A stretch of 63,997 nucleotides of DNA, the filler included, from Lenisia limosa (lineage: Eukaryota; Protista; Breviatea), in assembly GCA_001655205.1 (NCBI GenBank). It is 14 parts of 14 records of this genome, joined end to end, with 100 filler letters (N's around TTAATTAATTAA, not from the genome) between each part and the next. Parts side by side here need not be neighbours in the genome. Positions count along the whole stretch, not along the records: positions 9,963 to 14,341 come from LPNZ01009627.1; 13 more parts are not named here. One strand, given 5' to 3'. Made by a program: the position numbers and the translations under genes. Every line of letters starts with the position of its first letter. The first letter of the stretch is position 1. A model generated the notes under the pieces. That model was not told where the DNA came from. It was given only the letters and a program-made list of their open reading frames with translations, and did not search any database. Below are positions 9,863 through 14,120 of the stretch, one piece after another.

Positions 9863-11264
9863 NNNNNNNNNNNNNNNNNNNNNNNNNNNNNNNNNNNNNN
9901 NNNNNNTTAATTAATTAANNNNNNNNNNNNNNNNNNNNNNNNNNNNNNNNNNNNNNNNNNNNGGGGGGGGTAAACGAAGGTAAAACGAAGGAAATTTCGA
10001 TGAAGAACCATCTTCTTCATCATCATTATCATCAACATTAATAACATCACTATCATCTTAACAACATCACGATCACAACAAAATCCAAACAAAATCCCCG
10101 CCATCAGGCTCAAGGAGGTCGATACATTGTCGTATATTGAGGCATCCGCACGAAGCATCTCTGACTCTGCCTTGAGTATTTATGGAGGATGGCTTGGAAC
10201 TTTTCCTCGAGGAGGACTTTGGAAACTTGTCAACCCTGGTAAGATTGGGAGATATAATATACCTAGAAACTTCATTCCGTTCATCACAACACCTGAGCTT
10301 AATTTTTGTTAAAACGTCACAAAATACACATATGATATGATATATACATTTACAGATGATATCATATAGTGTATCATTTTATATATTATATGATATAAAA
10401 AATATAATTACACTACATAGTAGAATATATTTCATGTACTAGTGTAATTTTGACAACATAATGAAAGTTGTAATGAATAGCCATGCAAGGTCCTGTAAAA
10501 AGATCTAATTTGCCCAAGAACGCAAGCCATCTGGACTATATGTTATTGAAAAAAAACAACAACGACAAGGCTGTCGTCATAGTAGTTGCTGGTTGGGATT
10601 GAAATTGTTCAAAGTTACGTTAGTACTAACTTCTAAAATTGAGAAATTTTGCCAACCAATGTTAGGACATTGTGAAGTAATTCCTCCGAACAAGTTTCGC
10701 TTGAAACAAAAATCACAAATTTTGTATAACATGGTAAATTTAGGTAAAAATACAAAGAAGAATAAGTCGTGTTTTTCAAGGTTTCGCGACACAGGCATAC
10801 ACTATTGCAAATGAATTGTATTTGATATAATATGAGCTGTCTTGAACGGTGTTGACTGATTTTTAAGTTCACTTCAGAATCGGTGGCATGCGCAGATATT
10901 CCCATATGTGGGCTAAGAAATCACATAAAATTAAGTAAGTGATGTAAAACAAAACCATGACTGCTGTTTGTCTCGTGTAGTCCCATGAAGAGCTCGGATA
11001 GTCAACGAATTTTTTTTCAAATGTATAAGTTGGAAGAAATGATCTTGTAAAGGAGGGAGTAGAACGAAGGAAATTTCTATGGATAACATTTTTACTAATC
11101 ACGAACCAAATAATCTGGAACTCCAAATATGAATACTATATTATATAACATAGGGAAAATCCCCCATGTTTGCATGTATGTCTTGCTGAGGAATGGGCTT
11201 AGACTACAGTGTGGGTTAAGCCCGAGTGTATCAAAGTGCTTGAATCGGCCAAATATCAGACGAG

Positions 11265-11412
11265 ACCTCATATCCGCGCAGTGATATGATACCTCATATC
11301 CACACATTACCTATCCACCAGCAGTGATATGATACCTCATATCCACACACTACCTATCACTGCGCGGATATAAGGTATCATATCACTTCGTGGATAGGTT
11401 GTTAATGGTGTG
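11265..11412. repeat. Compound direct plus inverted repeat (fold-back)
   Basis: gcagtgatatgatacctcatatccacaca occurs twice directly, followed by an inverted copy (cactgcgcggatataaggtatcatatcact...gtggatagg). Confidence 0.85.
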
Positions 11413-11967
11413 AAGATGACCCAAAAAGTGAAACAATACAACAATACATTAGAAATCAACTCGAATTATATTAAAATAACATTAAATCGGAACAGAAGAA
11501 AAAGAAAAGAAAAGAAAATAGATTGGAAAAGGGAACCAACAAAGAAAAGAAGATGAGAAGGAGGGGTAATTAAAAGAGAGAAGCGGCAAGTAGAAACAGT
11601 GAGCCAATGTTAAGAATAAAAGAAAAGAACTGCATAAGGATATGGAAGAAAGCGAATGCAGAAAAAGACAATGATAACAGTAAAAAAAAAAAAGAATGAA
11701 AATTAGAAAATAAGAAAAAGGTAATTAAAAGGAGGCAACCTTGTTTTTCGGAGAAGATATCACGCGAGAAGGTGGCTCTAAAAACATAAAGAATTGTATA
11801 AACATGGGGTATTAATAATGGAGGGAAGAGGGGCTTCGATAACAGTCTAGAACTGGGGTGATAACAAAATCCTTGTCTCCAACTAATTCGAAAAAGACCG
11901 GTAAAATATCGATACTTATCGAGGATTTATCGACAATTTCAGTTTTTATTGGGACCGAGGGGAAGCC

Positions 11968-13692
11968 CTAAATGACTCCAGCAGAAAAGGCCCTTTTATA
12001 GACCACCCGCAAACGGGGAGGCAGCAAGGCCCTATTTATAACGACGCCTGCGTGATAAGGCGCGGCCGTAGCGCAATGTGCCGACGGAACCGATAATATG
12101 GTCTGAGAGACGGGGGCTGAAATGCTGGATTGTGGCGCTGGGAGAGAGAAATCATCGTCATCTTCCTGGGGGGGGGGGTAAAATGAAGACAGTCGTTGTC
12201 TTACATTCCAGTCTTTATGGAGGGTTTTCATGTGCTTTTTGAGGGAGGCTTTGGTCTGATACGACCTGGGGGAGGGGGGTAAAATTGCAAAACTATGAAA
12301 CAAAAACAAAAAAACCCAAATCAACTCTGTTGGCTAGCAACACACGAGGGTAGATAACAACAAAACAAGAAGGGGCAACATGGGGGTGTTGGTGGTAGTA
12401 GNNNNNNNNNNNNNNNNNNNNNNNNNNNNNNNNNNNNNNNNNNNNNNNNNNNNNNNNNNNNNNNNNNNNNNNNNNNNNNNNNNNNNNNNNNNNNNNNNNN
12501 NNNNNNNNNNNNNNNNNNNNNGATCGACATACTCCCCAACCAAACGCCTGTGAAATTCTTTGGGTAACCTGGGGCCCCCATACCTGTGTAAAAGCCGCAC
12601 TACATCCCTCTATTCGACATTTGAAAGGTCTTTGCCTTGTATGTGTACGAAGGTGGATCTAAAACAGTAAGCTTGTTTATGATGATGATGACGGTGGGGT
12701 CCCCCCCCCCCTTATACCTAAGGCTCATTTTGGTTCGAAAAAAAAAAGAATGAATTTCTCGATAAATCCCGATATTTTACCAGTCTTTTTCGAACCAACG
12801 TGAAGACCTACTTATAACCCCTCACCCCTCATACCTTAAACATCCCGCAACGGGACATTTGAACGTTTTTGCCGGTTTGTGCCTCTTCTCGTGGGTATTG
12901 CGGTTCCCAACCTGGGGGGGGGGGGGGNNNNNNNNNNNNNNNNNNNNNNNNNNNNNCATGTGCATCTAAAATCGTAAACTTTTTGGCCTTATTTTTTTAG
13001 TTTTAATACCATGAACTTTTTCTAACATGAATCCAATATAATAAACTATTTAGCGAAGTGGGATAATATATTACGGCTTCACTACGGCCCGAAAAAGCCC
13101 ATTAGAGTATCGATATTTTTCGAGGATTTATCGAGAAATTCAGTCTTTTTTGACACGCAGGGAAGCCCAGATATACTAAAGCGAAAACTCCATTCAGCCC
13201 CTTTAATTAACATTTTGTAAGTATTTTGGCAAAAAAAAAATTAATTGCGCAGAGTCAAAGTACAAACACAAGATAGCCAACCTTCAAGGGGTACATGGTT
13301 TTGGACACATACGTGCACCCCGAAAACGGGCACTTGAACAGGGTTTTTGGCGAACGCTGTAACGGGTTAACTCTGCAAAATATCAAGTCAGAACTACCAC
13401 CACCATCATCATCATCACCATTATCATCATTATTAGTGTGATCGTCGGAATATCTGCCGCTGTGTTTCACCAGCAACATTATTTTCATCATTAGCATCAT
13501 AATCATCATCAACATCATAATCATCAACAACATAATCATCACCACCACCACTACCACCAACACCATCATCACCACCAACAAACACCAACCCACATCAACG
13601 ACACGATAAGTTGGAGCGGAGTTGGTGTGTGATCGTCGGAGTATTTGCCGTTGTGTTTCAGCCTTGATGAATTGAACTAATTTGTCGTCACT
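11968..13692 (-). CDS. C2H2 zinc-finger protein (three C-x4-C-x12-H-x3/4-H fingers); two middle exons are in swapped genomic order
   Basis: Exon A (13372-13282) ends KCPFSGCTYVSKTMYPLK. Exon B (12658-12584) is IHLRTHTRQRPFKCRIEGCSAAFTQ. Exon C (12911-12835) is VGNRNTHEKRHKPAKTFKCPVAGCL(R). Exon D starts at 12265 with (R)SYQTKASLKKHMKTLH. An upstream exon starts at 13692 (SDDKLVQFIKAETQRQILRRSH). The 3' end is uncertain. Confidence 0.9.
12267..12370 (-). repeat. Intron-resident repeat family B (representative copy)
   Basis: Sense consensus ...TTGTTGTTATCAACCCTCGTGTGTTG..AGCCAACAGAGTTGATTTTGGGCTTTTTTGTTTCATAAATTTT...CCCCCAG. Other copies near 9095, 13695, 31067, 31425, 32067, 34101, 46437, 50613, 54365, 62787 and 62987. 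Confidence 0.85.
12721..12808. mobile_element. MITE family A copy lying between zinc-finger exons C and B
   Basis: ta-aggctcattttggttcg...cgaaccaacgtgaagacc-ta; degenerate TIR with TA flanks. Confidence 0.8.
13074..13168. mobile_element. MITE family A copy
   Basis: cggcttcactacggcccg...gacacgcagggaagccc with the family core. Confidence 0.8.
13410..13590. repeat. Degenerate (ATC/ACC)n trinucleotide microsatellite in an intron; similar tracts at ~9680-9780, ~10015-10080 and ~63445-63550
   Basis: Runs of catcatcat/caccaccac. These explain the spurious Met/Ile/Val-rich ORFs in the track. Confidence 0.85.
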
Positions 13693-14064
13693 CTAGGGGG
13701 GGGGGGTAAATAGGAAAATTTATGAAACAAAAAGGCCCCAAATCAACTCTGTTGGNNNNNNNNNNNNNNNNNNNNNNNNNNNNNNNNNNNNNNNNNNNNN
13801 NNNNNNNNNNNNNNNNNNNNNNNNNNNNNNNNNNNNNNNNNNNNCGTACGTAAATAAGGGAGAGGGGAGAGAGGTAGGGAGGGTAAAATGAAGGACATTT
13901 CTATGAAGAATATTAATCACGAAGCGAAAAACCTGAACAAAAGAACAAAACAATAAGAGGCAATAACACACATGATCACTCAACGTTAAAGTAAAAAGAA
14001 GGATACTTTAGGGGAGGAGTGTTCGTTAGTGATAAAACGAAGGAACAATATACATGGCGTGGGA

Positions 14065-14120
14065 GGAAACTTCGAAATATGTGGAAACTTCGAAATATGT
14101 GGAAACTTCGAAATATGTGG
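14065..14120 (+). repeat. Perfect 18-bp tandem repeat, three copies
   Basis: (GGAAACTTCGAAATATGT)3GG. Confidence 0.95.

Follow-up and report, generated by a model that had tools for sequence, protein, structure and literature searches.

The zinc-finger gene of Lenisia limosa described here is an ordinary colinear gene that encodes four C2H2 fingers and is spliced in cis from exons A-X-B-C-D-E. We analysed it within a window of 63,997 nt (the whole stretch of DNA under study, filler included; assembly GCA_001655205.1), where its exons are written in the order A, C, B, D. This scrambled order is almost certainly a scaffolding error in which two small contigs were swapped, and not biology. The evidence comes from a gap-free contig of the same sequence, from re-assembled public reads and from the protein that the reordered exons encode.

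The locus as written in the window

The gene lies on the minus strand of the window. Exons were rebuilt by script, and their coordinates and window order A, C, B, D, each with an AG acceptor and a GT donor, agree with the original prediction. Exon A (13372-13282; 91 nt) lies between the acceptor ttttgcag and the donor gttggc, carries the Cys half of the first finger (FKCPFSGC...YPLK), with a phase 0 end; its reading frame also stays open upstream, so that the 5' end given here is provisional. Exon C (12911-12835; 77 nt) ends in phase 2 and exon B (12658-12584; 75 nt) in phase 0. Exon D (12265-12205, with the 3' end at 12205 taken from an RNA contig) opens with the third base of the codon that the C-D intron interrupts and encodes the His half of the final finger (...HMKTLHKDWN). 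It is followed by an intron with GT..AG ends (12204-12166; 39 nt in the window) and by the last exon, E (12165-11968), which encodes an acidic stretch and then a Ser/Pro/Ala-rich tail that ends in TAG.

The script likewise bore out the reading-frame argument for an order other than the written one. Only A-B-C-D is in phase (A and B end in phase 0, and the phase 2 end of C is completed by a base from D), and splicing in this order gives a product with no stop and three C-x4-C-x12-H-x3/4-H fingers, whereas A-C-B-D frameshifts into TAG. The fit of half-fingers across the exon ends is far beyond chance.

Exons C and B share a 406-nt island (12522-12927) that has an N gap on either side, one of 120 N (12402-12521) and one of 29 N (12928-12956); a further gap of 89 N lies at 13756-13844. 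The island consists of two blocks. The C block (12927-12694, minus strand) is a 234-nt contig that contains a C14 tract and acceptor, followed by exon C and by 141 nt from the start of the true C-D intron, an intron stretch that carries a MITE copy and a G11 run. The B block (12696-12522, minus strand) is a 175-nt contig that begins with the final 38 nt of the true X-B intron, continues through exon B and stops 62 nt into the true B-C intron. The two blocks share only the letters CAC, at the artificial join 12694-12696. The spacer from C to B had been said to look like a normal intron: it does measure 176 nt without N, and the 11-base homopolymer (12701-12711) and MITE copy (about 12742-12808) described within it are present, but it is not one genomic intron, since the start of the C-D intron is fused in it to the end of the X-B intron.

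A gap-free contig with the exons in order

A plain ORF from the window (10636-10905, minus strand), looked up in public assemblies, led to a comparison contig, NODE_972_length_15173_cov_20.96 of ENA ERZ3820729 (15,173 nt; coordinates on its sequence are prefixed L001). The 14,921 nt retrieved from it contain zero N. When the window piece was searched against this contig by BLAST, all blocks matched at 100% identity with the exception of one homopolymer indel. The contig and the Logan contigs described below probably go back to the reads that also underlie the window's assembly, given the shared study and similar depth, and thus represent separate assemblies, not separate data.

The arrangement in NODE_972 begins with the A contig (window 13755-12957, L001 117-915), followed after 120 nt (L001 916-1035) by the B block (window 12696-12522, L001 1036-1210), after 46 nt by the C block (window 12927-12694, L001 1257-1490) and after 13 nt (L001 1491-1503) by the D contig (window 12401-9963, L001 1504-3943). 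The B block thus precedes the C block. Across the 29-N gap, the true neighbour of the A contig is the B block and not C, and the 120 nt that lie between them are missing from the window. The C block and the D contig, 13 nt apart in NODE_972, are separated by 120 N in the window.

Each exon occurs once in the gap-free contig, at L001 500-590 (A), 907-990 (X), 1074-1148 (B), 1273-1349 (C), 1640-1700 (D) and 1741-1938 (E, including the stop). The introns between them measure 316, 83, 124, 290 and 40 nt, and all have GT..AG ends. Spliced as A-X-B-C-D-E, the frame stays open to the stop and encodes four complete F-x-C-x2/4-C-x12-H-x3/4-H fingers. The single homopolymer indel falls in the D-E intron, which has 39 nt with C11 in the window and 40 nt with C12 in the contig (L001 1701-1740); the 39-nt version creates a spurious 118-aa read-through ORF in the window (11968-12324).

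Three further look-ups concerned the same locus. A second ORF was found in public assemblies in the same ENA contig only, with no third assembly, and 34 nt of exon B had no exact match among the JGI metagenome contigs scanned. No assembly in the look-up contained the 42-aa ORF that runs across the disputed join.

Exon X and the four-finger protein

The colinear contig contains an exon that the window nearly lacks. Exon X (84 nt, phase 0 at both ends) encodes MHMLKHTGARNFKCPQCPLACVTQNELN; it completes finger 1 and opens finger 2. The window retains its first 9 nt, ATGCACATG (12965-12957, minus strand), with the acceptor gattttag before them, and the remaining 75 nt are lost in the 29-N gap. Because skipping exon X keeps the frame, the direct A|B junction of the original prediction looked perfect; that junction is in frame as claimed, but it passes over an exon whose start adjoins the gap. 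The gaps had also been suspected of hiding extra copies of B and C, and one of them does hide sequence of this gene, though it is a different exon, X, and no copy of B or C. Its in-frame skipping means that exon X could be a cassette exon; we infer that it is constitutive.

A pattern search of the spliced protein (C-x2-4-C-x12-H-x3-5-H, with an aromatic residue two positions before the first Cys) gave four matches: finger 1 (FKCPFSGC...HMLKH), finger 2 (FKCPQC...HLRTH, split between exons X and B), finger 3 (FKCRIEGC...HEKRH) and finger 4 (FKCPVAGC...HMKTLH). Finger 2 scores 28.4 bits against Pfam zf-C2H2 (PF00096; gathering cut-off 25.2) over model positions 1-23 of 23, and finger 3 tested alone scores 15.8 bits, under the cut-off. 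Like C2H2 proteins of this Pfam family, the protein has tandem fingers, with Cys spacings of x4, x2, x4 and x4 and x12 to the first His, and linkers of the H-T/K-x4-F-K-C type; it differs in that each finger is split by an intron. We take the x4/x2/x4/x4 pattern to be reminiscent of YY1-type proteins and assign no orthology to a named family.

Re-assembled reads and RNA

Two public runs of one study hold the sequence, a DNA run available as Logan contigs (X1; 70.9 Mb), which holds 92% of the sampled words, and a poly-A RNA run (X2). Contigs of both runs, not raw reads, were placed on window 11850-13755. Within this interval, no Logan contig of X1 crosses the C-to-B spacer. Record 3 (260 nt, depth 20) aligns to 12522-12696 alone, and 26 letters at one of its ends and 59 at the other differ from the window; record 4 (328 nt, depth 13.6) aligns to 12694-12927 alone and has overhangs of 77 and 17 letters that likewise do not match. 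Because these two records stop matching at 12696 and 12694, the continuity of the window breaks at 12694-12696 on re-assembly. Record 5 (304 nt) matches 12957-13137 and carries 123 more letters, none of which lands on exon C.

By length arithmetic, record 5 corresponds to L001 735-1038, record 3 to 1010-1269 and record 4 to 1240-1567. With this placement from lengths and coordinates, successive records overlap by 29-30 nt on L001, as expected of k=31 contigs in the order A-intron/X, B, C, D. The block breakpoints seen in NODE_972 are also the breakpoints of the Logan contigs. The gap-free order and the departure of the Logan contigs from the window at 12694-12696 together indicate that the window's scaffold swapped the 175-nt and 234-nt contigs. 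A genomic order A-B-C-D and a lack of anything spanning the join beside the G run had been named in advance as observations that would tell against a scrambled gene; the first is what the gap-free contig contains and the second is what we find among the re-assembled contigs.

RNA contigs of X2 cover the 3' part of the gene. Record 10 joins 12204 to 12164, where a shared G permits a GT..AG reading (39-nt intron), and covers the first 57 nt of exon E. Of the 90 nt of record 11, 53 fall on exon D and the other 37 probably lie on the 3' end of exon C, a placement based on the depth of bin 12810-12873 (10.6 x 37/64 = 6.13), which makes this contig a product of C-D splicing. Since no RNA contig in X2 lies on exons A, X or B, the A-X, X-B and B-C splices are predicted, and the C-D and D-E splices are those seen in RNA.

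How the blocks may have been swapped

Homopolymers and microsatellites are common break sites of short-read contigs, and a C14 run, the G11 run and a (CAT)n stretch are found at the block ends: one end lies at C14, another 8 nt past G11 and another just after (CAT)n behind a G12 run. On the gap-free contig, the C block runs on as ACCGTCCCATTTG into the D contig, and the (CAT)n stretch and G12 run precede the B block. We propose that the locus was broken into short contigs at these stretches and that, between the A and D contigs, the B block (175 nt) would then have been set one position too late and the C block (234 nt) one too early, with the orientation of both right and their order wrong. 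At 175 and 234 nt, the two contigs fall below usual insert sizes, which makes their ordering by paired-end links unreliable. The two blocks would finally have been butt-joined on their 3-nt overlap, CAC (12694-12696), 5 nt from G11. In the true order the C block continues as CAC-ACCGTCCC, which is similar to the start of the B block, CACCGTCATC, and this likeness may have aided a gap-closing or overlap step.

Misordering of short contigs in paired-end scaffolds is a known class of assembly error. The present case resembles it in that the blocks are under the typical insert size, the N gaps are of estimated length, the breaks fall at homopolymers and a microsatellite, orientation is kept while order is swapped, and another assembler recovers the right order. 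It differs in that the contigs were merged without N on a 3-nt overlap, so that the error looks continuous. The marks of a misassembly are otherwise present: the blocks are bounded by the 120-N and 29-N gaps on their outer sides and by the 3-nt overlap inside, the same sequence exists gap-free in the other order in NODE_972, no listed Logan piece bridges 12694-12696, and reordering yields a coherent gene with an open frame, GT-AG introns and four fingers. A swap of two small contigs with fusion at the G run was the third of the explanations initially offered, where misassembly was rated a serious alternative, and it is the one that the data bear out, with the fusion point located beside that run. 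Repeat collapse at the MITE was considered as a cause and rejected; the join is outside this element, and its nearest copies, which are inverted, match over no more than about 28-42 nt (86-96% identity).

Alternative explanations

The other explanations initially offered, a truly scrambled gene (requiring back- or trans-splicing or DNA unscrambling) or an excised circle, are contradicted by the A-X-B-C-D order and GT-AG introns of the gap-free contig and by the lack of a DNA-run contig across the C-to-B join. It is very unlikely, though the best placed of the remaining readings, that the C-to-B junction belongs to a real but rare DNA molecule, such as a chimera of library preparation or whole-genome amplification, a small B-C circle or a tandem B-C duplication in some cells. 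The 3-nt microhomology CAC at the join, with the near-repeat ACCGTC 2 nt out of register, would suit template switching or microhomology-mediated joining, and head-to-tail joining of L001 1036-1490 would look identical to the join in the window. However, record 4 passes the site for 77 letters unbranched, which means that k-mers of an alternative junction are absent or too rare to keep, and the B and C contigs, with word depths of 20 and 13.6, do not exceed their flanks (27-36), which argues against an extra copy. Contig shuffling also accounts better for outer block ends that coincide with contig ends at N gaps or homopolymers and for the absence from the window of the 46 nt between B and C. 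A tandem duplication or excised B-C circle was accordingly rejected on the depth of the segment and the unbranched record, evidence at the contig level that leaves room for rare molecules. The more specific proposal that a minority of DNA molecules carry the end of C joined to the start of B at CAC, as an extrachromosomal circle or a somatic two-exon tandem duplication captured by the assembler, is slightly less probable again.

Readings that make the scrambling a property of the genome or of its transcripts are the least credible. Spirotrich ciliates such as Oxytricha have scrambled germline genes, and in an arrangement of that sort the window would represent a germline-type genome and the ENA contig a processed somatic genome in which the gene is colinear, a scenario to which we give hardly any weight. 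Identical sequence does occur in two arrangements across two assemblies and, as in Oxytricha, the coding segments in the window are permuted on one strand with a functional order that can be deduced from the protein. Yet the colinear contig holds more DNA (120, 46 and 13 extra nt), not less, and keeps all introns and repeats. The rearranged blocks are bounded by N gaps, and in place of the pointer repeats that accompany permuted contiguous DNA in ciliates the join has only CAC, with no pointer repeat longer than 3 nt; the contiguous DNA is itself colinear. DNA re-assembly shows the colinear path only, with no second genome version in the reads, and the borders of the segments are spliceosomal GT/AG intron ends at which RNA contigs are spliced. 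A genome that truly runs A-C-B-D, with its mRNA put in order by back-splicing (as in circular RNA) or by trans-splicing, strikes us as just as improbable. What speaks for it is the window's own letters, in which the DNA order differs from the expected mRNA order. The gap-free contig is colinear (A, X, B, C, D, E), so that real DNA order and mRNA order are the same, and the sole junctions in RNA contigs, C-D and D-E, are ordinary forward splices on it. A colinear genome leaves nothing for back- or trans-splicing to explain, and the swap of two contigs remains the explanation that we adopt.

Repeats and neighbouring features

A high-copy element of about 110 nt (...CCAACAGAGTTGATTTGGG...TTTCATA...TTTTA-C(7-17)-AG) recurs roughly every kb along the 15-kb contig, with copies at window 12266-12370 and 13693-13755, at L001 61-178, 1211-1272 and 1537-1639, and about 15 in the sequence L002. 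In six of seven clear copies, AG or TAG follows the C run. This AG serves as the 3' splice site of the C-D intron, with support from RNA, and the B-C and D-E introns finish in the same tail. In an introner-like manner, the element may be a source of splice acceptors. A MITE-like repeat with TTCGAAAAAGAC-type ends is present at 11887-11968, 12742-12808 (inverted) and 13090-13168. Its Logan word depth of 15,000-190,000, compared with about 14-36 for unique sequence, points to thousands of genomic copies.

Upstream of exon A, a microsatellite-like (ATG/GTG/GAT)n stretch (13388-13600) is open in the frame of exon A back to a TAG at about 13700, and a 34-nt repeat (13436-13469 and 13627-13660) is read there in two different frames. 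Three exact tandem copies of the 18-nt unit GGAAACTTCGAAATATGT lie at 14065-14120, and a cluster of copies of about 38 nt (GCAGTGATATGATACCTCATATCC...), both direct and inverted, at 11262-11396. On the plus strand, 10109-10237 is an exon-like open frame (...SIYGGWLGTFPRGGLWKLVNP) with a GTAAGA donor at its end, which may belong to a neighbouring gene; an Atlas search with this ORF returned only noise, with scores of at most 0.54.

Implications for the assembly

N-gap lengths in this assembly are unreliable: 89 N stand for 56 real nt, and at the 29-N and 120-N gaps the true neighbours lie at distances of 120 and 13 nt. The length of 120 N matches the actual distance from A to B, but the gap stands on the wrong side of this block. 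In addition, one N gap conceals a whole exon. Outside the ciliates, a spliceosomal gene with truly scrambled exons would have been a remarkable find, but this gene is not one. Where short blocks lie between N gaps, exon order is untrustworthy even if the blocks are joined without N, and any further genes that appear out of order in this assembly should first be compared with the contigs of ERZ3820729.
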